DNA of 63,285 nt, counting the filler, from Guillardia theta CCMP2712 (taxonomy: Eukaryota > Protista > Cryptophyta): assembly GCF_000315625.1 (NCBI RefSeq). It is 3 parts of 3 records of this genome, joined end to end, with 100 filler letters (N's around TTAATTAATTAA, not from the genome) between each part and the next. Parts side by side here need not be neighbours in the genome. Positions count along the whole stretch, not along the records: positions 1 to 29,652 come from NW_005434385.1; 2 more parts are not named here. One strand, 5' to 3'. Numbering within the stretch: the first letter of the stretch is position 1; each line of letters begins with the position of its first letter. Below the pieces are notes generated by a model. The model had not been told where the DNA came from. It searched no databases and was given only the letters and a program-made list of their open reading frames with translations. This document shows, piece after piece, positions 1 to 29,652 of the stretch. The translations under genes were made by a program, and so were the position numbers.

Positions 1-35
1 TGCTCGGCCTCGTTGTGGGCTTTTGCAACTTGATC

Positions 36-350
36 CTAGTCTAAAGAGGCGCTCGAGCACTGGGAGTACACGGCCTACAATGCGAACCCTGCTTCTGAGG
101 CGTCTTTCTACTAGTCTAAAGAGGCGCTCGAGCACTGGGAGTACACGGCCTACAATGCGAACCCTGCTTCTGAGGCGTCTTTCTACTCTCTACTTCTGCT
201 GTCTTCTCTTGGCTTCCTCAGCCTCAGTCAGGAGAGTTGCCTCTCCTCACCTTGGCCTTCGGTCACCACCTACTCGTCCTCCATTCAGCTTCCTCAGCTT
301 CAGTCAGGAGAGTTGCCTCTCCTCACCTTGGCCTTCGGTCGCCTCCTACC
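36..350. repeat. 3' UTR tandem units of copy A: 2 x 75 bp and 2 x 76 bp
   Basis: ctagtctaaagagg... recurs at 36 and 111. ggagagttgcctctcc recurs at 231 and 307. Confidence 0.9.
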
Positions 351-374
351 TTCTCTCCTTACCTTGGGCTCAGC

Positions 375-2522
375 TCAAGCTCGGTACGGGCTCGCCCCGT
401 CTTCTTCCTCGCCCTCGCCTTGCTCTTCCTCCATGTCTTCCTCTTCTTCGCCATCTTCCCTCATCTCCACTCGCAGTCGGTCCTTCTTGTCCACCTTCAG
501 CGAGCAGGCCAGCACATGCATCTCTGCGAATTTACTCAGTGCTATGAACAGGAGGCTAAGAGATCGACGCTCTATGTCGTCGCTCTCCGCCTCCTGCTCA
601 AGCTCAGCAGCTGCCGTTGCCCGTGGCGAGAACGCGCTGCCCCTCCTTGCCTTCTTGCTCTCTCCTTGCACGCGAGTCCAGCGCTTGCTCTGCAGCCACT
701 TCCCCAGCTTCTCCTTGAGCGCGTTGCGTCCCACTCCCTGCTCCTCTGGCATCTTCGCCCACTCTCCCAGCGCCATGAACTCCAGGCTCCCCGGAGAGTA
801 GAACGTGTCGTGGAGGTTGCCAACGGCCTTGTCCAGGACCAGCTTGATCGGCTCGCTCGTCCCTGCCTCGTTCAAAGAAGCTGCATCTTCGATGACTGCT
901 GACAGCTCGCTGACGAGCTGCATGTCCTCTTGGCTTGACGGAGATGCTGCCTCCATTGTGATCCTCTCCAGGTCTGTAAACTCCAGCCACTCTCCCTCGC
1001 TCTCCTCCTGTCGCTGCGCTGCGTCGCTGGTGCCCCGCTGACCAGCCGCCTCAGAGTCAGGCTCCTTGTCGAAGCCGACTGCTTCGAGCTTGGTTGCTGC
1101 GCCTTCGAGATAGAAGGGCAGCTCCTTCATCATGCGTCGAGCATCCTCCGTGGAGCCGAGGAGGATGCATAGCTTGGACCCGTTCCAGGACTTGGTGTTC
1201 AAATCCTCCTCCATGTCGATGCCTTCAACGTTGATCTCGAGCCTGTTAGCGATCTCCAACAAGACTCTCTTGACTCTTGCGATAGACGTGTTGCCGCCGT
1301 TGCACAGCCCCTCCATCTCCTTCCTCGTGAAGCGACCAGATGCCGCCGTCGACTTGATGATGATCTTGATCTCCTTGCCGTCCTTGCCGCCTGCCTTCTT
1401 CTGCATCCTTGATGCCTTCTTCAACTTATTTCTGGACACAAAGCGATCAGCTGTCAACTCGACTGCGAGCGCCTCTCTGATCTTCGGGTCCTCGCTGAAC
1501 AGAGTCAGGTGTACTCCCTCCATCGCTTCGCTCTCTCGGAAAGCTCGAAATGCTGTATCATTCGCCTCTGGGCAGCTCGAGGAGACGATCCACTCCACCT
1601 CCCTCTGTCTCCAGATGACGTTGGCCCCTACAGCGATGAAGCCTTTCTGACCTAAGCCTTTGTGGACTTGCTGTCCTGGCGCCCCAGCGACCAGCATGCC
1701 TGCCAGCGGCTGGAGTTGGACCGCTGCAAGGGACTGGCGCAGCAGCTGATAGCGATAGACGGCAGCTATCTCAGCCGTTGTCATGCCGCCCAAGGTTAGC
1801 AGGTGAGTCAGCTCTGCCAAGCTGCCCCCTTTACCCCAGGGTCCTCTCTTGGCTCGAATCTTGAAAGATCGATCGTGCACGATGCTCACATGTACAGCTG
1901 TGAACTTGCGACCATCGATCGCGAAGTCCTCTCTTCCCTGCCAGAGCTTCTCCGCTTGTGCATTGCGGAGGAAGGAAACAGTCACCGGGATCTCCTCAGC
2001 ACTCGCTATCTCGGGTCTATACGGAGCCTTCCACATGATTGCTTTACTCTCTTGCACTGAGTCTACGATCAGTCCGATCTCTTCAAATTTCTTCTTCAGC
2101 TTTTCTTCATGGTTGACATACACCGAGGAGATGCCCAGGAGAGTCATGGAGATGAAGGGAGTCACCTCGTTGCCTGCTGAGGCGGTGTATGTCTCGACCT
2201 TCTCCTTCTTGGCTTCTTCAATCTGCTGCATAAACCACTCTCTGGATGCGTCACTCCATCCAGTCATCGCTTCTTGCAGAAGCTCACGTCGTGCCTGCTG
2301 ACATGTCGAGCGGATGGCTTCTGCGATAGCGTCGGGGGTGCATCCCTCCACAGCCTTGCAAGCCTGGGCTGTCCTGCTGTTCGGATAACGCTTCGCGAAG
2401 CTCTTCACTCTCTCGACGAGATCAGCTTCGAGGACAGAGGCATCCACAAGTCCGCTCTGCGTGTATTGGCATGATCTCCGATACAGCAGGTTGCGAACAT
2501 TTTCATCATACTGAAGAACCAT
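375..2522 (-). CDS. ORF1/gag-like protein of the telomeric element (~715 aa from first ATG, MVLQYDENV...), with two RRM-like segments and an acidic C-terminus
   Basis: Intronless ORF. ISMTLLGI..EEKLKKKFEEIG..VTVSF..AQAEKLW..FAIDGRKFTAVHV and KLCILLGSTEDARRMMKEL..LEG..KLEAV fit an RRM beta-alpha-beta pattern. No RT (QGD/YxDD) or endonuclease motif seen. Confidence 0.65.
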   Translation of the reverse strand: MVLQYDENVRNLLYRRSCQYTQSGLVDASVLEADLVERVKSFAKRYPNSRTAQACKAVEGCTPDAIAEAIRSTCQQARRELLQEAMTGWSDASREWFMQQIEEAKKEKVETYTASAGNEVTPFISMTLLGISSVYVNHEEKLKKKFEEIGLIVDSVQESKAIMWKAPYRPEIASAEEIPVTVSFLRNAQAEKLWQGREDFAIDGRKFTAVHVSIVHDRSFKIRAKRGPWGKGGSLAELTHLLTLGGMTTAEIAAVYRYQLLRQSLAAVQLQPLAGMLVAGAPGQQVHKGLGQKGFIAVGANVIWRQREVEWIVSSSCPEANDTAFRAFRESEAMEGVHLTLFSEDPKIREALAVELTADRFVSRNKLKKASRMQKKAGGKDGKEIKIIIKSTAASGRFTRKEMEGLCNGGNTSIARVKRVLLEIANRLEINVEGIDMEEDLNTKSWNGSKLCILLGSTEDARRMMKELPFYLEGAATKLEAVGFDKEPDSEAAGQRGTSDAAQRQEESEGEWLEFTDLERITMEAASPSSQEDMQLVSELSAVIEDAASLNEAGTSEPIKLVLDKAVGNLHDTFYSPGSLEFMALGEWAKMPEEQGVGRNALKEKLGKWLQSKRWTRVQGESKKARRGSAFSPRATAAAELEQEAESDDIERRSLSLLFIALSKFAEMHVLACSLKVDKKDRLRVEMREDGEEEEDMEEEQGEGEEEDGASPYRA

Positions 2523-2630
2523 ACTTAGAAAGCTATTTGAAGTATACAAACCTCTCGCTTGCAGCTTCCTTGGCGCCCTGGCGGCTTCCCCTACACCTGA
2601 CGAGGAGCCATGCTGCCGAAAATAACGGCT

Positions 2631-2694
2631 AAAAAAAAAAACCCTAAACCCTAAACCCTAAACCCTAAACCCTAAACCCTAAACCCTAAACCCT
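2631..2694 (+). repeat. Telomeric repeat spacer: A11 followed by (CCCTAAA)7 CCCT
   Basis: Read directly. This is the plant/algal-type TTTAGGG repeat on the minus strand. Confidence 0.97.
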
Positions 2695-5399
2695 ATTATT
2701 ATTATTATTATGTGAGTTTATTAGAATGCTAGAATGTTGCTCGGCCTCGTTGTGGGCTTTTGCAATTTGATCCTAGTCTAAAGAGGCGCTCGAGCACTGG
2801 GAGTACACGGCCTACAATGCGAACCCTGCTTCTGAGGCGTCTTTCTACTCTCTACTTCTGCTGTCTTCTCTTGGCTTCCTCAGCCTCAGTCAGGAGAGTT
2901 GCCTCTCCTCACCTTGGCCTTCGGTCACCACCTACTCTACCTCCATTCAGCTTCCTCAGCCTCAGTCAGGAGAGTTGCCTCTCCTCACCTTGGCCTTCGG
3001 TCGCCACCTACTCGTCCTCCATTCAGCTTCCTCAGCCTCAGTCAGGAGAGTTGCCTCTCCTCACCTTGGCCTTCGGTCGCCTCCTACCTTCTCTCCTTAC
3101 CTTGAGCTCAGCTCAAGCTCGGTACGGGCTCGCCCCGTCTTCTTCCTCGCCCTCGCCTTGCTCTTCCTCCATGTCTTCCTCTTCTTCGCCATCTTCCCTC
3201 ATCTCCACTCGCAGTCGGTCCTTCTTGTCCACCTTCAGCGAGCAGGCCAGCACATGCATCTCTGCGAATTTACTCAGTGCTATGAACAGGAGGCTAAGAG
3301 ATCGACGCTCTATGTCGTCGCTCTCCGCCTCCTGCTCAAGCTCAGCAGCTGCCGTTGCCCGTGGCGAGAACGCGCTGCCCCTCCTTGCCTTCTTGCTCTC
3401 TCCTTGCACGCGAGTCCAGCGCTTGCTCTGCAGCCACTTCCCCAGCTTCTCCTTGAGCGCGTTGCGCCCAACTCCCTGCTCCTCTGGCATCTTCGCCCAC
3501 TCTCCCAGCGACATGAACTCCAGGCTCCCCGGAGAGTAGAACGTGTCGTGGAGGTTGCCAACGGCCTTGTCCAGGACCAGCTTGATCGGCTCGCTCGTCC
3601 CTGCCTCGTTCAAAGAAGCTGCATCTTCGATGACTGCTGACAGCTCGCTGACGAGCTGCATGTCCTCTTGGCTTGACGGAGATGCTGCCTCCATTGTGAT
3701 CCTCTCCAGGTCTGTAAACTCCAGCCACTCTCCCTCGCTCTCCTCCTGTCGCTGCGCTGCGTCGCTGGTGCCCCGCTGACCAGCCGCCTCAGAGTCAGGC
3801 TCCTTGTCGAAGCCGACTGCTTCGAGCTTGGTTGCTGCGCCTTCGAGATAGAAGGGCAGCTCCTTCATCATGCGTCGAGCATCCTCCGTGGAGCCGAGGA
3901 GGATGCATAGCTTGGACCCGTTCCAGGACTTGGTGTTCAAATCCTCCTCCATGTCGATGCCTTCAACGTTGATCTCGAGCCTGTTAGCGATCTCCAACAA
4001 GACTCTCTTGACTCTTGCGATAGACGTGTTGCCGCCGTTGCACAGCCCCTCCATCTCCTTCCTCGTGAAGCGACCAGATGCCGCCGTCGACTTGATGATG
4101 ATCTTGATCTCCTTGCCGTCCTTGCCGCCTGCCTTCTTCTGCATCCTTGATGCCTTCTTCAACTTATTTCTGGACACAAAACGATCAGCTGTCAACTCGA
4201 CTGCGAGCGCCTCTCTGATCTTCGGGTCCTCGCTGAACAGAGTCAGGTGTACTCCCTCCATCGCTTCGCTCTCTCGGAAAGCTCGAAATGCTGTATCATT
4301 CGCCTCTGGGCAGCTCGAGGAGACGATCCACTCCACCTCCCTCTGTCTCCAGATGACGTTGGCCCCTACAGCGATGAAGCCTTTCTGACCTAAGCCTTTG
4401 TGGACTTGCTGTCCTGGCGCCCCAGCGACCAGCATGCCTGCCAGCGGCTGGAGTTGGACCGCTGCAAGGGACTGGCGCAGCAGCTGATAGCGATAGACGG
4501 CAGCTATCTCAGCCGTTGTCATGCCGCCCAAGGTTAGCAGGTGAGTCAGCTCTGCCAAGCTGCCCCCTTTGCCCCAGGGTCCTCTCTTGGCTCGAATCTT
4601 GAAAGATCGATCGTGCACGATGCTCACATGTACAGCTGTGAACTTGCGACCATCGATCGCGAAGTCCTCTCTTCCCTGCCAGAGCTTCTCCGCTTGTGCA
4701 TTGCGGAGGAAGGAAACAGTCACCGGGATCTCCTCAGCACTCGCTATCTCGGGTCTATACGGAGCCTTCCACATGATTGCTTTACTCTCTTGCACTGAGT
4801 CTACGATCAGTCCGATCTCTTCAAATTTCTTCTTCAGCTTTTCTTCATGGTTGACATACACCGAGGAGATGCCCAGGAGAGTCATGGAGATGAAGGAAGT
4901 TACCTCGTTGCCTGCTGAGGCGGTGTATGTCTCGACCTTCTCCTTCTTGGCTTCCTCAATCTGCTGCATAAACCACTCTCTGGATGCGTCACTCCATCCA
5001 GTCATCGCTTCTTGCAGAAGCTCACGTCGTGCCTGCTGACATGTCGAGCGGATGGCTTCTGCGATAGCGTCGGGGGTGCATCCCTCCACAGCCTTGCAAG
5101 CCTGGGCTGTCCTGCTGTTCGGATAACGCTTCGCGAAGCTCTTCACCCTCTCGACGAGATCAGCTTCGAGGACAGAGGCATCCACAAGTCCGCTCTGCGT
5201 GTATTGGCATGATCTCCGATACAGCAGGTTGCGAACATTTTCATCATACTGAAGAACCATACTTAGAAAGCTATTTGAAGTATACAAACCTCTCGCTTGC
5301 AGCTTCCTTGGCGCCCTGGCAGCTTCCCCTACACCACGCGTGCAGCCATGGTGCCTGAAATAACCGGCGCTAGCCATGGTGCCTGAAATAACCGGCGCT
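2695..5399 (-). mobile_element. Telomere-associated non-LTR-like element, complete proximal copy B with (TAA)n 3' tail
   Basis: Flanked on both sides by telomeric repeats. (ATT)5AT at 2695-2711 is the 3' tail. The 3' UTR has 1 x 75 and 3 x 76 bp units. A 28-bp tandem duplication sits at the 5' end (5344-5399). Confidence 0.85.
3113..5377 (-). CDS. ORF1/gag-like RRM-containing protein, copy B (754 aa; the ATG equivalent to copy A is at 5260)
   Basis: Same protein as 375-2522 apart from two visible substitutions (TPF/TSF, MALG/MSLG). Confidence 0.65.
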   Translation of the reverse strand: MASAGYFRHHGCTRGVGEAARAPRKLQARGLYTSNSFLSMVLQYDENVRNLLYRRSCQYTQSGLVDASVLEADLVERVKSFAKRYPNSRTAQACKAVEGCTPDAIAEAIRSTCQQARRELLQEAMTGWSDASREWFMQQIEEAKKEKVETYTASAGNEVTSFISMTLLGISSVYVNHEEKLKKKFEEIGLIVDSVQESKAIMWKAPYRPEIASAEEIPVTVSFLRNAQAEKLWQGREDFAIDGRKFTAVHVSIVHDRSFKIRAKRGPWGKGGSLAELTHLLTLGGMTTAEIAAVYRYQLLRQSLAAVQLQPLAGMLVAGAPGQQVHKGLGQKGFIAVGANVIWRQREVEWIVSSSCPEANDTAFRAFRESEAMEGVHLTLFSEDPKIREALAVELTADRFVSRNKLKKASRMQKKAGGKDGKEIKIIIKSTAASGRFTRKEMEGLCNGGNTSIARVKRVLLEIANRLEINVEGIDMEEDLNTKSWNGSKLCILLGSTEDARRMMKELPFYLEGAATKLEAVGFDKEPDSEAAGQRGTSDAAQRQEESEGEWLEFTDLERITMEAASPSSQEDMQLVSELSAVIEDAASLNEAGTSEPIKLVLDKAVGNLHDTFYSPGSLEFMSLGEWAKMPEEQGVGRNALKEKLGKWLQSKRWTRVQGESKKARRGSAFSPRATAAAELEQEAESDDIERRSLSLLFIALSKFAEMHVLACSLKVDKKDRLRVEMREDGEEEEDMEEEQGEGEEEDGASPYRA

Positions 5400-5432
5400 C
5401 CTAAACCCTAAACCCTAAACCCTAAACCCTAA
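5400..5432 (+). repeat. Innermost telomeric repeat tract, ~4.7 x CCCTAAA
   Basis: Read directly. It marks the junction with unique subtelomeric DNA. Confidence 0.95.
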
Positions 5433-7167: not shown

Positions 7168-9003
7168 ATGGCCAAAGACAGCAAAGATCAAAAAGCTCAA
7201 GAATCGGGAAAAGTATCTGATGAAAATGCGAAGGCAGAAAAGCCCGCTGTCCTTATAGACCCTGTTACAGCAGCAATGCTGGGTATTCATCTACTCTTGA
7301 TTTGATTGATCGATCTGACCATCACATGTTTTAGAGTTAAAGAATTCCATGCAGACGATTGACAAAGCTGTCACCTCTAAGGAGAACAGATTTATGTCTC
7401 GAGTGATACGCCAGGTCACCAAGCTACGCCGACTTCTCAGCAAGAAAGTCCTGCTAAAGGCTCTAGAAACTTATGTTTCTCCTGACTCGCCTGTAATCGA
7501 AGGCGTGGTTGCTTTTGTAGAGGGTGTGACAGAAGACGACGTAATGCAAGTTGAAGCTCCTGCTACTGCCTCCCAAGAAATTGAGAAGAATGCCGTCATC
7601 GATAAGAAGGCTGAAGAAGAAAAGAATGCGGAGATCGAGAAGAAAGAGCGAGAGGAAGCTGCTTTCTACAAGAAGATGTTGAGTATCCCAGAAGCAGAGT
7701 CCTTTGTTCAACTCCTCGTGACTATCTATCTGCTCGACAAGAAATATCTTGACAATGCAATCTCCTGTGCATCTTCTTTGATACAACGTGCTCAGTCTTT
7801 CAACAGGAGGTATTTCGTGGAAATTTTCCTTGTCGAAACAATTTTTAATGTGCCCTGCAGGACTATGGATCAAATTTTGTCGAGAGGATACTTTTACTGG
7901 GCAAGGTGCATGGAACTCACAGGAAAATCATCGCAAATCAGAAACGAGTTGCTAGCCGCGTAATGCTCGTTCATCTTTTGCCACAATTCGACTTACTTCA
8001 TACTTCAGGTATAGGACGACGGCTTTGAAGCATGACCAAATTGGACAAGCCACTCTCTTAAACCTTCTCCTACGCAACTATCTGGAGTTCAATCTCTACG
8101 AACAGGCAGATACGCTGATGAGGAAAACTTCGTTTCCGGAGGGAGATGCCTCAAACAACCAGCTTGCAAGATACCTGTACTATACAGGAAGAATCAAGGC
8201 TGTCCAACTTGAATACACCGATGCGTAAAATTCATCGAATGTCGGCGATCGATTCATTCACTGTCTGTTGTAGGTTCTTGAATCTTCAACAAGCCGCAAG
8301 GAAAGCTCCTCAGCAAAGTGCTCTTGGATTCCGAAAAACGGTTTTTTAATATATTTCTGTGCATCGGAATACTTACATAACTATGCAACAGGTTTACAAG
8401 TTTTCAGTAATTGTTCAACTTCTTCTTGGCGAGATTCCAGATCGCTCGACGTTTTCACAGAAAGGAATGATTGCAGCGCTGAAGCCATATCTTCAGATAT
8501 GTCAGGCTGTACGGGTTGGAGATTTGGGGGCATTTCACCGGGCAATGCAAGAGCATGGGGATACTTTCAAGTCTGACAAAACCTACTCGCTCATCGTTCG
8601 TCTCCGCCACAACGTGATCAAGACTGGCCTGAAGAAGATCAATACGGCATATTCGAACATCAGCCTTGAAGATGTCTGCGCCAAGTTGTGTCTCGAGTCC
8701 GTTGAAGACACTAGGTTCATCGTGGCCAAGTGCATCCAGGACGGCGTAATAGACGCAACCATCGACCACGAGACCAACACAATGATGTCCAAGGCTAACT
8801 TGGACATTTACACCACAAGCGAACCTCAGATGCAGCTGCACAAACGAGTGGCGTTCTGCTTGGACATGCACAATCAAGCGGTCAAGGCAATGAGGTATGC
8901 AGAGAATACCAAGACAGAGTGGGAGTCAGCTGAGGAAAGACGCGAGCGCATGAAACAGGAAGAGGAGAGGATGAATAGCATGGATTCGGACGATGATTTC
9001 TGA
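7168..9003 (+). CDS. RPN3: 26S proteasome regulatory lid subunit RPN3/PSMD3 (spliced, ~5 short introns)
   Basis: [53 protein letters not shown] (PCI), [17 protein letters not shown]. First intron is 7283-7334, GT-AG. Confidence 0.95.
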
Positions 9004-9183: not shown

Positions 9184-12119
9184 TTAGATTCGTACTTGGC
9201 ACGTATGCAAGTTTACCTTGCTGCGGATGTGGTTTGATGGAGACGCTTCTTCTTGCAAGGAAACTGCAACAAGGCGTTGTTTGAGATCCTCCAACTTGCT
9301 GCAATCTTGATCTGAGCAGCACAGAGCAAGCATGCCCCTTGTCCTGGCCAGATCGAGTCACGTCAAGAGCACCACCAATGCGCTACACTCACTCCAGCAG
9401 ACTCACAAAAGCTTCAAGCCTGGAAATGAGCGCTGTCTCCTCCCCTGCTGCTTCCATAAGTCAGCATCAGCTGTGAACGGAATGTAAACCTCCGATCATG
9501 TTCATCGCCTCCAGCAGAATTCCAGGATTCGACTTGGCAGCTTCCGCTGCCACTTGTACAGATCCTCTCAACTTAGACTGGAGTAGACTCAGCATGGCCT
9601 CAGCTATCGTTCTTCGCTCCTCCTCCCCTTCCTCATTTGCTTCACTGCCTGCGCCATCGAATCTCTGAACCATAAGATGGAGAGCCGTCCGAAGACGATG
9701 AGGGTCTGTCTCTTCCTTGAGCATTCTCATCAAAAATGGACTGAGTAGCCTACGCAGAAAACGTCGAATCTTCATTCTGCTCATCCGCTTGGTCACAATC
9801 TCGACCCGCTGCCAGTCTCCCTCGGAACCCGACTCCTTGTCTTCGATATTCATCGCTACCGTGAGAAGAAAGCTCAACACGCTCTCTACTGGTTGAATGC
9901 TGCTGTCTGACAAAGCACACAACACATCGACTGCATACGCCATGACAGGAGGTGAAACTTCGGGGAGAACAAGGACATCGGAAAGTGCTGCCAGCATCTT
10001 ATCTGTGAGGGGTGCGAGGTAGTAGAGGAGTTCCAACGCAGCTGTCTGACAAGAGGCAGGAAGGCTTACAAAAGGCCCAGCCTGCATTTCACTGGCCCTC
10101 ATCTGAGCACGAAAGAAGGGAACGAGCAGTTGCTGAAGAGTGGCTCCTCCTCCGCACATTGTCTGGGCCGAAACGGAATGCTTCCCCTCGCCTGATACTC
10201 TCCTTGCCAACTTGCCGAGCAGGAGCAGGCAGTCCAGCGAGAGCTGGGGGTCGCGATCCTGAAGGGTCCAAAGCAGCTTTGGCAGCGCAGCGATCCAGCG
10301 GCTGGCATGAGGAGGAAAGGAGGTGGGCCATGTCTCCAGCTGCTGTGCAATGAAAGAGAGTCCAGCTCGCTTGAATGAGGAACGACTCTGCGACGCCTCC
10401 CAGCAAGAGGTGAAGCAGTCAAGAAGATCCTGCTCTACCGCTCGCTCTCTCCCTTCCATGCCGAGATACAAAACCTCATGTGAAGCATTTCGAACCAGCA
10501 GAAGCGAAACGGATGGGAGAAGCTCAGCTGCTGTCTCTGCTATTGCCTTGACAGTGGAGGGTGAAGGCAACGGATCTGCTCCTCCTCGCTTGCCACTGGC
10601 AGCTCGCGTTGATTTTGTCAGCACGATCCTCAGCTGCTCGAATTCATGTAGAGAGAAATTCAGCAAGTCCTGACGCATGTGGAAGTTACCACGTGAGATG
10701 AGGTCACAAGACAAGCAAGTCGTTGCGACAGACAGGATGGCACGGTTGAGAAACTTCAGCTCAGTTTGTGAGGCTGCTAGCAAATCCTCAGCTGCAAGAG
10801 GAAACTTGACAAGGAGCGAACCGACCGCTGAACCCACTTGACACTTGACAAGCTGCCATGGAGCCATCTTGGTCGGCACTTGTAGACGAATCTCTTGCAA
10901 GCAGCTGGCAGCTAACTGGAAAGTCCGAACCACCTGGATAGCTGAGCTGACAAGGCAGCGCGAGACGCGCGAGTCCGCAGCAGAAGAAGGGGACTGCAGA
11001 CTCTCCTTCCAGATCTGCTCCAAGAGAGGGAGAGAAGAGGAAAAGAAGCCCAGCAGCATGTAAGCACCCTCATGTTCCCTTGGCTTCTCATGCCTATGCC
11101 ATGAACACTCTCCCAGTCTCACAATGTTATACTCTTCTTCTCTCCATTCCAGCTCCCCTCCTGTCTCGTCCTGGTTCTTCTTTGGTTCTGAAGAAACTCG
11201 ACCTGCATCACCTCCTCCCTCCTTCGAGCTCCTTGGATCGGCTTGTTCTTTGCTAACGAGCTCAAAGAAAGAGCTCGCAGGCGGCCGACCCTCGAAGTTG
11301 GTCAAGGCAACAGCACACAAGAAGGCGTGCATGCGCTCAAGGATGAAGAGTCGATCTCTTGGTGAGATCGTCCGTAACCTCGGTGCTGACGACAGCAATC
11401 TCAGAGCGTCCTTTCTAGAGGAGGAGGAGGCGACGCTGATACCTCCTGCCACTTCCACTCCGCTCAGCATGTGGATGAAAATGGGGAGCAGCTGGGCAGA
11501 CAGCTGGCAAACTACCTTGGGATACTTGGGAACGAGGTCGTGAAGGAGCTCTAGAGCTGAGCTTCGGATCGACTCACTAATGTGTGAGAGTCCTCCACAC
11601 ACGTGAATTAGGTAGGCGTTGAGGTAGGGAGCTAGCACGCCTTCCTGCGCCTGACAGAGGACCAGGTTCATGAGCGAGCGAAGCTCTCCTCGCACCGCCG
11701 CATCTGCATCCGAGACCATCGATGAGATTCTGTCCAGCACAACTCCAACGTGCGAGGAAAGCAGCGAAGGATGGAGAGAGAAAAAATCCTTCACTCCCGC
11801 CACACATTCCTTCCTGACATTGGCACTGTAGTGCGAGGCGTGAGAAAGAACGTCGGCTAGCGTTAAGCCCCTGCTGTTGACTTCCTTGCCGCTCCTGTCC
11901 ACCGCAACTGACTGTCGAACAAGATTCAGCTTCTTTGATTGAATCGTTGTGCTCGTCTCATTCTCTTTCACAAGCTTTCGCCCTAACTTAACCTAAAATC
12001 CGTAAGTTCGTATTGTTCTCAAGGAGACGACGTACTTTCTTCTTCTTGAAGTCTGCAGGCTGCTTGTTCTTTGCTTTACCCTTACCCTTCTTCTTCTTGA
12101 TCCCCTGCAGGTCCGGCAT
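9184..12119 (-). CDS. TEX10: Pre-rRNA processing Rix1-complex subunit TEX10/IPI1 (3' end approximate)
   Basis: After removing intron 11993-12035 the N-terminus reads KQPADFKKKK|VKLGRKL..NETSTTIQSKKL, then LSHASHYSANVRKE and ..LSHISESIR..ALELL (Ipi1_N pattern). The body is HEAT-like. Confidence 0.85.
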
Positions 12120-12202: not shown

Positions 12203-13908
12203 GCAGCATGGGAGTAGAGCATGGGACTAGAGCATGGGAGTAGAGCATGGGTGTAGAGCATGGGTGTAGAGCATGGGAGTAGAGCATGGGAGTAGAGCAT
12301 GGGACTAGAGCATGGGACTAGAGCATGGGACTAGAGCATGGGACTAGAGCATGGGACTAGAGCATGGGACTAGAGCATGGGAGTAGAGCATGGGTGTAGA
12401 GCATGGGAGTAGAGCATGGGACTAGATCTGTAACTTTGTGGCACTCAAGTAGAGCATGGGAGTAGAGCATGGGAGTAGAGCATGGGAGTAGAGCATGGGA
12501 GTAGAGCATGGGAGTAGAGCATGGGAGTAGAGCATGGGAGTAGAGCATGGGAGTAGAGCATGGGAGTAGAGCATGGGAGTAGAGCATGGGAGTAGAGCAT
12601 GGGAGTAGAGCATGGGAGTAGAGCATGGGAGTAGAGCATGGGAGTAGAGCATGGGAGTAGAGCATGGGAGTAGAGCATGGGAGTAGAGCATGGGAGTAGA
12701 GCATGGGAGTAGAGCATGGGAGTAGAGCATGGGAGTAGAGCATGGGAGTAGAGCATGGGAGTAGAGCATGGGACTAGAGCATGGGAGTAGAGCATGGGAC
12801 TAGAGCATGGGAGTAGAGCATGGGACTAGAGCATGGGAGTAGAGCATGGGAGTAGAGCATGGGAGTAGAGCATGGGACTAGAGCATGGGAGTAGAGCATG
12901 GGAGTAGAGCATGGGAGTAGAGCATGGGAGTAGAGCATGGGACTAGAGCATGGGACTAGAGCATGGGAGTAGAGCATGGGACTAGAGCATGGGAGTAGAG
13001 CATGGGAGTAGAGCATGGGACTAGAGCATGGGGACTAGAGCATGGGAGTAGAGCATGGGACTAGAGCATGGGAGTAGAGCATGGGACTAGAGCATGGGAC
13101 TAGAGCATGGGACTAGAGCATGGGAGTAGAGCATGGGAGTAGAGCATGGGACTAGAGCATGGGACTAGAGCATGGGACTAGAGCATGGGACTAGAGCATG
13201 GGACTAGAGCAAGGGACTAGAGCATGGGACTAGAGCATGGGAGTAGAGCATGGGTGTAGAGCATGGGACTAGAGCATGGGAGTAGAGCATGGGAGTAGAG
13301 CATGGGACTAGAGCATGGGAGTAGAGCATGGGACTAGAGCATGGGACTAGAGCATGGGACTAGAGCATGGGACTAGAGCATGGGAGTAGAGCATGGGAGT
13401 AGAGCATGGGAGTAGAGCATGGGAGTAGAGCATGGGAGTAGAGCAAGGGACTAGAGCATGGGACTAGAGCATGGGACTAGAGCATGGGACTAGAGCATGG
13501 GACTAGAGCATGGGACTAGAGCATGGGAGTAGAGCATGGGACTAGAGCATGGGACTAGAGCATGGGACTAGAGCATGGGAGTAGAGCATGGGAGTAGAGC
13601 ATGGGAGTAGAGCAAGGGACTAGAGCATGGGAGTAGAGCATGGGACTAGAGCATGGGAGTAGAGCATGGGACTAGAGCATGGGACTAGAGCATGGGACTA
13701 GAGCATGGGACTAGAGCATGGGACTAGAGCATGGGAGTAGAGCATGGGAGCAGAGCATGGGACTAGAGCATGGGACTAGAGCATGGGACTAGAGCAAGGG
13801 TGTAGAGCATGGGACTAGAGCATGGGTGTAGAGCATGGGAGTAGAGCATGGGAGTAGAGCATGGGGGTAGAGCATGGGAGTAGAGCATGGGACTAGAGCA
13901 TGGGGGTA
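12203..13908. repeat. 13-bp satellite (AGAGCATGGGAGT/AGAGCATGGGACT), ~1.7 kb
   Basis: Read directly. One ~22-bp interruption at ~12426-12447. Confidence 0.97.
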
Positions 13909-14176
13909 GAAGCACCAGGGGCAGGGAGGAGCACGTGAAGTCATTTGAAAGGCAACGCCGAGTCACATAGCTAAAATCGGGAACGGACGGACAGATGTGA
14001 GCGCAAGGAAAAGGAGTGAAGGAGAAAGAAGAGGGAAAGGGACGACAGACAAGGTCAAGGATGTCCTGAGAGAAGGGGAACACTCACATGACAAGCAGAC
14101 GATGATCAGAGGTAGTGACAAGCAGACGATGATCAGAGACAAGCAGCATCGAGGCATCGTCGTTCATGCTCGTAAA

Positions 14177-15317: not shown

Positions 15318-16294
15318 ATCACAAAAGACTACAAGTTAAAAAAGTTGCAAGCAGCATGCCACGACCAACGTGTTTCTTTGGTAGATCTCTTCTATTGAAT
15401 GCTCGAATGATCAGATCACAAATAAAGACTTTTTACATAGTGTGAAACTGCGAAACAAAATAAGCGAACGAAACTCGGATAAAGTTGTGTGCACTACCTT
15501 CACGTTTTCCAACAGATGAAGAATGCAGAATTTCTTTTCACCAATAGTTGTGAAAGTCGAGTTGCAGAATTCCAAAGCGCTTTTACGTTGACCGTAGATC
15601 GATCGAAGGTTGTAGAGTTCCTAGAGTAACATATCACGAGAACTAAAAGCTTCAGAACTCGACGAGTGAAATCTAAGACTTCTAAATGGCGATCTCATGA
15701 AGAAAAGGAAACATACAAATATGTACCAAACTGAAGATTAATGCAAAATCGAATTTCAACAAACTCATCATTGTATCGAAATAAGTTGTCAGCGATCTGC
15801 TCATCCTCTACCGAAGTGAAAGCGACATGAAGCAAACACCACAAAAACGTCCCCTTTGCCCTTACTTTCTGATCCTCGCTTCAAAGCTCTCACAACCGCT
15901 CATGACATTGCCCTTGCCAAACAACTACTCGCTTCACTCGCGCAAGAATAGGCATCCAATATCGCCATTGCAGTGCCTCACCTGTCCCATCTCTTGCTAT
16001 GAAACTGTTTCCCTCCTCCCCCTTACTATACGGCTGAGCCCTCCTCCCTACATTGCCATGGTGCCTCCCCGCCTCCTCGCATTGCCATGGTGCCTCCCCG
16101 CCTCCTCGCATTGCCATGGTGCCTTGGCTCCCCTCTCCTCTCTTACCTCCATCTGCTGCTCCTCCGCGAAGTGCGCAAGGCTTGCGAACATGGCTGATCT
16201 ATTTTGGGACCACTTTCCGTTACAAAGTCGTTACAAAAGCAATTGCCTGCGAGTGGGCCCGCCACTGAGGAGTATCGGAGAGTTTTATCGCACC

Positions 16295-22920: not shown

Positions 22921-23699
22921 ACGATCCGAACAGCTCCGATCCCTGAGGTAGCGGCTGCAATGAAGCGACTAGCCATGCTGCTAGCAATGGCACAAACTGC
23001 TGCGATCGGAGTGAAAACAGAAAGAACATGGCGTAGAATGACAGAAATGTGGAGTAGATGATATTGATACAAATGCGAAGAACGAGAGAGAATGAAAGGG
23101 AGAGGGGGGCGAGAAGACGAGATTGTCGGTGATCAAATATGATCATAATCGAGATGATCGAGATTATGATGATACAGATAATTTCGACGAGATTCGAACA
23201 TGTCTTGACACAATTACCATAGTCAGCACCAAACCCCAAACACGTCAATGGAAATGATGGTAGAGATGGTTCAGAAACGAAGATCATCTAAATAGAAGCG
23301 CTCATGTGCATGACAAAGGTGATCGTGAGGAAGAACAAGAGAAGCATGAAGATAGTGACGATGAAACAGTCTTCGAAACGCGAGCGAATGAAATGATCAA
23401 CAATGTGATGAAAATTTTATGGACAAGACAGAGGAATTCAGAGAAACGAGTGATGATATTGAGTTTCAAGATAAGCTGATTGATTTACTTCCAATGACAA
23501 AGGCAGTAATGCAAAACGACGGAGGTATGGGAAGAGAACATTAAAGGAGCAAGGAAAGGAGGCGGGAGTGGTTTGAGAAGGTAGTAGGTCTAGACGAAGG
23601 TGAATAGAAGAGCAAGCTATTCAAGTTGCAAACCTCACAGATAGAAGAAGTTCAAACACGAAGTGATGACAGCGAGAAGAGCACAGACAGAGCAAAAGA

Positions 23700-23792
23700 A
23701 AGAAAGAAAGACAGACAGACAGAAAGACAGACAGACAGACAGACAGAAAGACAGACAGACAGTCAGACAGACAGACAGACAGACAGACAGAA

Positions 23793-23823
<31 letters not shown>

Positions 23824-23851
23824 AAGACAGACAGACAGAAAGACAGACAGA
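23700..23851. repeat. (AGAC)n microsatellite
   Basis: Read directly. Confidence 0.95.
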
Positions 23852-27952: not shown

Positions 27953-29016
27953 CTATTGCTGCAGTACCCCTACCCCATGCACCAATGACCATGACCCTAC
28001 CCACAACAATCCAGAACTGATTGGATAATACTACCCCTTCAAATGACCCCACCCTGATTTCAAAGTACCATCCTGGCTACCCCCATTTTGACCGGAATCT
28101 GGAGGGGGTACGTGGGGTACCAGGTAGATGATGTTACTCACATCTGTTGTGTCTCGTTTCTGGATTCCTGCCGGTGAAGGTGTAAATCTGGTCAATTGAT
28201 TTGAAATAATTATTGAAATTGATGTTTTCAAGTATTTAATTTGGGTTTTTATCACATTGAATTCGAAATTGATGCAAAAGGGGACCCCAAGAGGAGGAAA
28301 TATTGTCGACAAACCCACACCATGCAGGTAACCCTGACACACAAGACAGGAAGGCATTACAAGACATGAAGCAGCAGCAACAGAAAGTAAACTATCACAG
28401 TCATCATGACATCAACCATGACAACAGTGGCAACTATGACAACAAATATGAAAGAAATATGAACATCGGAGCCACTGGAGCAGCAGGAGCAGGATCAGGA
28501 GGAGAGTGAGCAGAATGAGACCGTAGGATCATGAAAGAGGATGGCTGAAATCATTCTGATAGAGATAGACTTTCTCAAGACCATGAAAACGATGATGACA
28601 CGACTACGATGATTATCATTTTGAAGAAGAGAACAATTGAAGAAGAATGCGTAAGCGGTGCCGGGCTATGATTATCATCATCGATGATGAGCCAATGCAT
28701 GGATGATCAAGAAAGAGGAAGAGATCGTAACATGATCATGACGAGCTGGGAAACTTTGTCAGTTGGTTGCTCTCACACCCCTCAGAATGGTGCAAGTCCC
28801 TTATCCTTTCCTTCTCTGTACGGATGAGGTCTGGTCCTGTGTACTCACCTCTTCCTACCCAGGTGGCATATAGTCTGCTGGTCCTCGTCCTCCTCCTGGA
28901 GCATGTGCATCTCTAGGCGACGGGGCTGCTGTGCTGATCTTCTTCCAGGTGCTTTGCTTTCACTTGCATCCCACAAGCCTGCAGAATTTCAACGTGGGGA
29001 GAAGAAGTATCAAGGT

Positions 29017-29652
29017 AAGCTAGATCCATCACCATCACCATCACCATCATCTAAGCTAGATCCATCACCACCACCACCATCATCTAAGCTAGATCCATCA
29101 CCACCACCACCATCATCATCTAAGCTAGATCCATCACCACCACCATCATCATCTAAGCTAGATCCATCACCACCACCACCATCATCATCTAAGCTAGATC
29201 CATCACCACCACCATCATCTAAGCTAGATCCATCACCACCACCATCATCATCTAAGCTAGATCCATCACCATCACCATCATCTAAGCTAGATCCATCACC
29301 ACCACCACCATCATCATCTAAGCTAGATCCATCACCATCACCATCATCTAAGCTAGATCCATCACCACCACCACCATCATCTAAGCTAGATCCATCACCA
29401 TCATCATCATCTAAGCTAGATCCATCACCATCACCATCATCTAAGCTAGATCCATCACCATCACCATCATCATCTAAGCTAGATCCATCACCATCATCAT
29501 CATCATCTAAGCTAGATCCATCACCATCACCATCATCTAAGCTAGATCCATCACCACCACCATCATCATCTAAGCTAGATCCATCACCATCACCATCATC
29601 ATCATCTAAGCTAGATCCTTCACCATCACCATCATCATCATCTAAGCTAGAT
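29017..29652. repeat. Minisatellite: TCTAAGCTAGATCCA core with variable (TCA/CCA)n linkers, running into an assembly gap
   Basis: Read directly. It translates as SSKLDPSPPP in ORF 28903. Confidence 0.9.

Follow-up and report, generated by a model that had tools for sequence, protein, structure and literature searches.

An ORF1-only retroelement family at a fixed position in the telomere repeats of Guillardia theta, probably mobilised by co-resident telomeric LINEs

The window considered here is a stretch of 63,285 nucleotides (nt) from the cryptophyte Guillardia theta CCMP2712, and the piece analysed covers the opening 29.6 kb of contig C289; genome searches covered 87.1 Mb in 669 contigs. 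This contig begins with two copies, A and B, of a retroelement-like unit of about 2.7 kb that is embedded in telomere repeats and that we refer to as family A. When the minus strand is read in the direction of the contig start, unique DNA is followed by 4.7 telomere units, copy B with its TAA tail, a telomere tract, a run of 11 T residues, and copy A (Table 1); from the first telomere units on, this is the order given in the preliminary description of this DNA. At the contig start, copy A breaks off ~40 nt short of its 3′ end, and the interstitial tract was called by Tandem Repeats Finder (TRF) as 8.1 units at positions 2639-2695. Each unit contains one intact open reading frame (ORF) of 715 residues, and no Pfam match to a reverse transcriptase (RT) or an endonuclease (EN) was obtained in either 2.7-kb unit, in keeping with the gene content first claimed for them. 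In its 3′ untranslated region (UTR), copy B carries the terminal motif TCTAGCATTCTAATAAA, which it shares with the autonomous telomeric long interspersed nuclear elements (LINEs) described below. The two copies are ~99% identical across the ORF. However, they have different subtypes of the 5′-terminal unit, and the repeats in their 3′ UTRs consist of 75 bp × 2 in copy A versus 76 bp × 2.9 in copy B. Since both 5′-unit subtype and 3′ UTR repeat number differ, copies A and B represent two independent insertions rather than a local duplication. What had been described as a tandem array is thus indeed a pair of near-identical copies, but one made of separate insertions of two subtypes.

Table 1. 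Features of the analysed piece, with positions counted along the window
Feature	Position	Strand	Remarks
Copy A, RT-less family A	1-2629	(-)	5′ end at 2629; subtype with GCCGTTATTTTCGGCAGCATGG unit; slightly 5′-truncated
Copy A 3′ UTR repeat	36-187	(-)	75-bp unit × 2, duplicating the conserved TTTAGACTAG motif region
Copy A ORF1-type reading frame	375-2522	(-)	Intact, 715 aa + stop
11-T run	2630-2640	(-)	Between telomere tract and copy A 5′ end; extra bases at the 5′ junction
Interstitial telomere tract	2641-2695	(-)	Between copy B tail and copy A; TAGGG + 7 units
Copy B, whole	2696-5399	(-)	2704 bp; 5′ end at 5399
Copy B tail	2696-2710	(-)	Five TAA triplets; family range 3-8
Copy B 3′ UTR	2711-3112	(-)	402 nt
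TTTAGACTAG motif in copy B 3′ UTR	2774-2783	(-)	
Repeat in copy B 3′ UTR	2874-3096	(-)	76 bp × 2.9
Copy B ORF1-type reading frame	3113-5260	(-)	715 aa + stop, from the first ATG common to both copies
Copy B 5′ UTR	5261-5399	(-)	Junction TTTAGG/AGCGCCGG
5′-terminal unit of copy B	5344-5399	(-)	28 bp, present twice
Innermost telomere tract	5400-5432	C-strand on plus, TTTAGGG on minus	4.7 units, adjoining unique chromosomal DNA
Rpn3/PSMD3 proteasome gene	7349-9003		
Ipi1/TEX10-like gene	9467-11971		
Repeat array	12205-13910		13-bp unit repeated 131 times
Microsatellite	23683-23851		(ACAG)42
Repeat array	29016-29652		33-bp unit × 19, up to the end of the piece

A whole-genome search with the unit recovered at least 40 near-full copies of family A at 97-100% identity, and this number of near-identical copies excludes a chance origin. 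With contig ends inferred from the clipped flanks of the extracted loci, 39 of 40 near-full copies are located at contig ends and point outward, which bears out the prediction that copies would be found at many chromosome ends. On the minus strand, 21 of the 22 copies fall within 17 kb of the contig start, while all plus-strand copies (18/18) fall within ~33 kb of the contig end; further copies on other contigs were found by a protein-level search. On one short contig (L025), more than 100 telomere units lie beyond a copy and run to the contig end, which is therefore a true terminus. Several contig ends carry two to four copies in a row, and at different ends the families that share these arrays, namely A, a second ORF1-only family (A2) and two autonomous families (B and C), are interleaved in differing orders. 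In the genome annotation, the family A copies appear as fragmentary “hypothetical proteins.” Collapsed or chimeric reads at a repetitive end might in principle have produced both the duplication and the internal telomere tracts. Indeed, the assembly is an older draft of 669 contigs in which copy A is cut by the contig start, and the arrays inside contigs C72 (~438-443 kb, L009) and C176 (~7.5-20 kb, L041), which are head-to-head neighbours pointing apart, resemble possible misjoins. These two arrays may be either a scaffold misjoin at repeated ends or the relic of an end-to-end rearrangement. Nonetheless, an assembly artefact is hardly credible, given that the identical unit with the same junction logic is present on more than 40 contigs, that the arrangement recurs on an independent environmental contig (L048), and that at least 16 sequencing runs from 7 studies contain at least half of the unit's sampled words.

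Each of the 32 distinct family A 3′ ends examined reads CTCACA, then three to eight TAA triplets (mode 5), then TAGGGTTTA, and joins the telomere unit in the same phase, so that the telomere-joined tails expected from the window are found throughout. At the other end of the element, the flank stops at TTTAGG in 23 of the 38 copies with a telomere unit in reach, and most of these flanks continue with AGCGCCGG or AGGCGCCG. The remaining 5′ junctions have lost a few bases or gained extra ones, as in the T run of the window, and small 5′ truncations are present among the copies. The first 19-28 nt of the element are found from once to more than 15 times, with unit boundaries that vary between copies. 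A precise 3′ junction together with a ragged 5′ junction constitutes a signature of target-primed reverse transcription, and a precise 3′ end with a simple-repeat tail and a variable or truncated 5′ end are hallmarks of retrotransposons without long terminal repeats (non-LTR). The flanks could reflect a target duplication of 4 bp (TAGG) or a deletion of 3 bp; as the target is itself a repeat, the two outcomes are indistinguishable. Family A enters the telomere unit at one fixed position and in one orientation, and so do A2, B, and C; the sense strand of family A is the G-strand.

Each telomeric family starts with its own 5′-terminal unit of 19-28 bp, which occurs 1 to ~28 times with boundaries that vary by copy. 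Arrays of such units are located in the window (5344-5399) and in the extracted loci L036 (3716-4300), L033 (8844-8922), and L037 (9448-9961). Recurrent template switching at the 5′ end of the RNA could have produced them, or they could represent a monomer-type promoter. A 12-nt match of the element's 5′ unit to a 29-bp repeat elsewhere in the window (16051-16124) was dropped, as it looked like unrelated start-codon context.

The best RVT_1 matches of the genome are located at contig ends and point outward, and matches to the C-terminal domain of ORF2 also map to contig ends in the outward direction. A full family B element (L036/L037) lies on contig C15, distal to four RT-less copies. It opens with ~28 copies of a 21-bp 5′ unit and codes for a 701-aa ORF1 followed by a 2500-aa ORF2, in which Exo_endo_phos (aa 447-630), RVT_1 (aa 1165-1418, 121.8 bits), and a weak zf-RVT match were identified. 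The element closes with a 522-nt 3′ UTR ending in TAC triplets joined to TAGGG, and a 5′-truncated copy of the same family stands directly behind a telomere tract (L044). The second autonomous family, C (L033, L003), has its own 20-bp 5′ unit, a 717-aa ORF1, and an RT that is 59% identical to that of family B. Its 3′ end, read from the copy on contig C184 (L003), has the sequence TCTAATAAACTCAAA and continues with TAA triplets that run into TAGGG. The best matches of the partner RT in the PDB were R2 and L1; the partner endonuclease matched L1 EN best, weakly (E = 0.003), and neither TRAS1 nor R1Bm EN was found among its PDB matches. A protein homologue search with the part of ORF2 spanning the apurinic/apyrimidinic-type (APE) endonuclease and the RT returned only distant matches (~26% identity), from which no clade is assigned.

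Two peculiarities of the autonomous families were also noted. One family C copy (L033 101-340, contig C4) lacks both a stop codon and a 3′ UTR, its TAA tail and telomere junction being located within the coding part of ORF2, as if reverse transcription had been initiated internally at an AUA/UAA-rich site. There is a precedent in SART1, where initiation relies on target annealing and occurs internally where a target-like triplet is available (PMC7265360). In addition, an N-terminal Ulp1/Peptidase_C48 match was detected in ORF2 of the environmental family C element (L048 2443-10167, aa 156-270) at 37.6 bits for a cut-off of 20.7, and a corresponding match in the G. theta family B ORF2 (L037 1301-8800, aa 145-257) reached 17.5 bits. 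A SUMO-protease-like domain is unusual in a LINE ORF2.

The second ORF1-only family, A2 (GUITHDRAFT_107162 type), is 62% identical to the family A ORF, has no ORF2, and is bounded by telomere tracts on both sides (L042-L047). Families A and C end in TAA triplets and families A2 and B in TAC triplets, a correlation that hints that C may mobilise A and B may mobilise A2. The 17-nt terminal motif TCTAGCATTCTAATAAA is present in A and B; A2 carries it from TAGCATT on, and C retains only the TCTAATAAA core. At the nucleotide level, A and B resemble each other in nothing but the last 19-22 nt of the UTR, which contain this motif. Farther upstream, a (T)TTAGAC motif is found in all four families and is extended to TTAGACTAG in A, A2, and B; in single-sequence folds, this region pairs with TCTAA of the terminal motif (closing helix UUAGA/UCUAA). 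The longer partner that had been predicted therefore exists in the form of families B and C, which carry APE and RT in the same arrays, but the 3′ end that it shares with family A covers ~17-22 nt and not 150 nt.

The window ORF aligns over its full length with the ORF1s of family B (29% identity) and family C (31%, E = 1e-81), both of which lie directly upstream of an ORF2 with APE and RT. It is therefore an ORF1 and not an ordinary host gene, which answers an objection raised at the outset. Homologues numbered 47 among 1.84 billion representative proteins, and all those with a named source are from cryptophytes. Transcriptome-derived homologues were found from Rhodomonas salina (P0019), Hanusia phi (P0012, P0029, and P0077), and the Guillardia MMETSP set (P0080 and P0081); the ORF1 superfamily is thus expressed and extends beyond a single species. 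Pfam gave nothing significant for the ORF1s of A, A2, B, and C, and no match to an RNA recognition motif (RRM). An AlphaFold (AF2) model of ORF1 built on 15 family members had a mean predicted local distance difference test (pLDDT) score of 68. Its top PDB match in Foldseek was the multi-RRM protein Prp24 (E = 2e-5, prob 0.99), followed by UP1, NONO/SFPQ, Sxl, and HuD. In VIA, residues 380-485 matched single RRMs with Z of 7-8 over ~80 residues and a root-mean-square deviation of ~2.7, tied with ACT domains, and values of Z under 8 can reflect a common arrangement. The RRM-like character attributed to the ORF thus found a counterpart in the multi-RRM fold matches of a moderate-confidence model but none in Pfam. 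With moderate confidence, a multi-RRM fold is plausible rather than established for ORF1, and it fits what is known of LINE ORF1 proteins.

Intact reading frames were found in 27 of the 35 distinct full-length family A ORFs of the extracted loci. Counting variant codons by means of a majority-rule string of these ORFs, the 27 intact ones had a mean divergence of 0.58%, with synonymous (pS) and nonsynonymous (pN) values of 0.016 and 0.003 and a pN/pS of 0.18. The family A ORF is under purifying selection. Low divergence combined with this pN/pS indicates that family A was recently amplified via copies with a working ORF, and the recent activity or homogenisation originally read from the near identity of the window copies is thereby borne out. 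In the ORF1 tree, A and A2 group with three transcript-derived proteins of Hanusia phi (support 99/99), and the other clade comprises B, C, and Logan contig D, all with ORF2, as well as a Rhodomonas salina ORF1 fragment; this topology suggests that the gag-only lineage may not be a recent deletion product. The same arrangement was seen in a relative, on the environmental contig L048, the ORF1 of which is 83% identical to that of family C. An A-like 3′ end is followed there by three telomere units, and a full family C element comes next, with at least 16 telomere units behind it.

A single Telomerase_RBD match above the curated cut-off (contig C21, 51 bits) corresponds to a fragment of a TERT gene. 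Given this match and the long terminal tracts of telomere repeats, the elements coexist with telomerase-type maintenance, as the preliminary description had it. Family A is called non-autonomous because no RT or EN Pfam match was found in a unit that is bounded by telomere tracts on both sides. Taken together, family A is very probably a non-autonomous, ORF1-only non-LTR retrotransposon that has a fixed insertion position in the telomere repeat and obtains its enzymes from co-resident telomeric LINEs. In the cycle that we envisage, a putative transcription of the G-strand would yield the RNA of family A, which the 715-aa ORF1 protein, a predicted multi-RRM RNA binder, would coat. The resulting ribonucleoprotein would then take up in trans the ORF2 protein, with its APE endonuclease and RT, of a co-resident autonomous telomeric LINE; family C would be the likeliest donor because of its tail type and 3′ end. 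The endonuclease would nick the C-strand within a telomere unit, presumably at CCCTA^AA as the junctions imply, and the 3′ OH thus released would prime reverse transcription at the UAA-repeat 3′ end of the RNA, where slippage could generate the three to eight triplets. The 5′ end would be joined less precisely, mostly after TTTAGG, and the 5′-terminal unit of 19-28 nt would often be recopied. Finally, telomerase may add repeats distally, leaving elements that are spaced by short telomere tracts and all face outward.

Several observations weigh against this reading. RNA-mediated transposition of family A is inferred from genomic sequence, and the present sequence data hold no direct sign of an RNA intermediate or of new insertions. 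Some of the sequencing runs containing the family A unit, with 20-44 Mb of contigs, may be RNA, but none is recorded as such and they are not counted as expression, and the Guillardia MMETSP transcripts were found only for the ORF1 of family B. Family A has no more than 17-22 nt of 3′ sequence in common with the autonomous families. RNAalifold gave no consensus structure for the 3′ ends, and the shared helix lacks support from covariation because it never varies. Moreover, with ~30% identity between ORF1s and a separate clade, family A is not a recent deletion derivative of B or C, and the head-to-head arrays of C72 and C176 depart from the outward arrangement at contig ends. The telomere tracts between copies are also substrates for recombination, and MoTeR arrays expand and contract in this manner (PMC7367193). 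Family A might be a subtelomeric gene family that owes its spread and homogeneity chiefly to recombination, gene conversion, or break-induced replication at the interstitial tracts, retrotransposition not being the main mechanism at present; the low divergence of the copies (0.58%) and the runs of two to four copies at several contig ends would agree with such a history. However, neighbouring copies differ beyond what block copying would leave, in tail length (3-8 triplets), 5′ subtype, number of 5′ units (1 to >15), 5′ truncation points, and lengths of the flanking tracts. The same applies to the window, where copies A and B differ in 5′ subtype and 3′ UTR repeat number, and the order of families differs between ends. 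An invariant 3′ junction opposed to a variable 5′ junction is furthermore typical of target-primed reverse transcription, and the pN/pS of 0.18 fits replication via functional masters. We consequently regard a spread mainly by recombination as quite unlikely. Within the arrays, reshaping probably comes from recombination or break-induced replication at the interstitial tracts as well, as in Magnaporthe (PMC7367193), yet the junction pattern is not accounted for in this way.

In the window, ~2 kb separate the innermost telomere tract from the start of the Rpn3/PSMD3 proteasome gene, and the Ipi1/TEX10-like gene comes next. With housekeeping genes so near the telomeric array, there is no long subtelomeric buffer. 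This scarcity of other buffer, together with the presence of elements at dozens of ends, would suit an ORF that is a domesticated host gene for a telomere protein, serving in capping or length buffering like the Gag of HeT-A. The purifying selection on the ORF points the same way, as does the gag-only A + A2 clade with its Hanusia phi transcripts, which suggests an old lineage. Yet any element whose protein prefers its own RNA should show selection among its copies, and the telomerase gene fragment and long terminal tracts imply that the elements are not needed for end maintenance. Domestication, which is compatible with a non-autonomous retrotransposon, is therefore unlikely. A broader picture is possible, though not probable, in which Guillardia, and probably Hanusia as well, has at its chromosome ends a mixed system of telomerase repeats permanently interleaved with specialised LINEs. 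The gag-only A + A2 lineage would then be old and would have been under purifying selection since before the Guillardia-Hanusia split, as a convergent counterpart of HeT-A in a telomerase-positive protist that possibly helps its host to protect chromosome ends or to buffer their length.

Few lineages are known to harbour telomere-targeting retrotransposons, namely insects, Giardia, Chlorella, two fungi, rotifers, and an anole. No cryptophyte appears in a 2023 survey of retrotransposons that insert into telomeres, which lists insects, Giardia, Chlorella, Pyricularia, an anole, and rotifers (PMC10088271). In our literature search, which did not cover Repbase, no description of telomeric LINEs in cryptophytes or in Guillardia was found. 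Four telomere-specific families reside together in this one model alga, two of them autonomous (B and C) and two ORF1-only (A and A2). The pairing of tail types, A with C and A2 with B, makes it possible to test the means by which an ORF1-only element enlists a foreign ORF2 protein. How the 17-nt 3′ motif and the triplet tail set the start of reverse transcription is likewise testable here, as is the repeated evolution of retroelement-rich telomeres alongside telomerase. The repeats formed by telomeric elements probably also cause scaffold errors at chromosome ends.

The tail of SART elements faces the chromosome end. Since the sense strand of family A is the G-strand and its 3′ tail faces the terminus, its orientation is SART-like and not HeT-A-like; the combination of HeT-A-like coding content, here ORF1 only, with a SART-like orientation was recognised in the preliminary description and is upheld. 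In Bombyx mori, SART1 and TRAS1, which belong to the R1 clade, use an APE endonuclease to insert at a fixed nucleotide of telomerase-type repeats, with which they coexist (PMC7265360). The 3′ junction of SART1 is precise and set by its 3′ UTR and by target annealing, and SART and TRAS insert in mutually opposite orientations (PMC7265360). Family A resembles SART in its fixed-position insertion into telomere repeats, its precise 3′ junction, and its tail directed toward the terminus. However, SART and TRAS are autonomous, with ORF1 and ORF2, and carry a poly(A) tail, whereas family A is devoid of ORF2 and ends in TAA triplets; its host is a cryptophyte, and the telomere repeat unit has 7 bases. 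The partner elements of Guillardia also differ from SART and TRAS, as their endonuclease weakly resembles L1 EN among PDB structures rather than TRAS1 or R1Bm EN, and their ORF2 of ~2500 aa bears an N-terminal Ulp1-like domain.

HeT-A of Drosophila encodes Gag alone and relies on co-resident telomeric LINEs for its RT; its abundant copies are arranged head to tail, and its ORF is under selection (PMC4700185). Family A is similar to HeT-A (with TART/TAHRE) in its Gag/ORF1-only coding content. Whereas HeT-A is added to bare chromosome ends, its 3′ end pointing to the centromere, in a genome that lacks telomerase repeats, family A is located inside telomerase repeats with its 3′ end outward, and an endonuclease-bearing partner and a TERT fragment are present. 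In Magnaporthe oryzae, the RT-less MoTeR2 accompanies the RT-encoding MoTeR1 in head-to-tail arrays with short telomere tracts in between (PMC7367193). Family A is comparable to MoTeR2 and to the FoTeRs of Fusarium, being RT-less and embedded in telomere repeats beside an RT-encoding partner. MoTeR2 shares 860 bp at the 5′ end and 77 bp at the 3′ end with MoTeR1, and its unique part is without evident function; the MoTeR partner has a restriction-like endonuclease, and the 5′ ends of MoTeRs face the terminus. Unlike MoTeR2, family A has kept a conserved 715-aa ORF1, shares ~17-22 nt with partners that are of the APE type, and is inserted in the opposite orientation.

Outside telomeres, the I factor of Drosophila has a 3′ end made of a variable number of TAA triplets that are generated during reverse transcription, and HAL1 (half-L1) of mammals is an ORF1-only LINE derivative that is mobilised in trans. 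Family A recalls the former in its variable TAA-triplet tail and the latter in its ORF1-only content, but the I factor and HAL1 are not telomere-specific and belong to other host lineages. A site-specific LINE with a non-autonomous dependant is therefore a kind of system that is already known. As far as can be told, what is new in G. theta is the combination of a selected ORF1-only element, endonuclease-type insertion into telomerase repeats, an outward tail, triplet tails, 5′-unit arrays, and a cryptophyte host.

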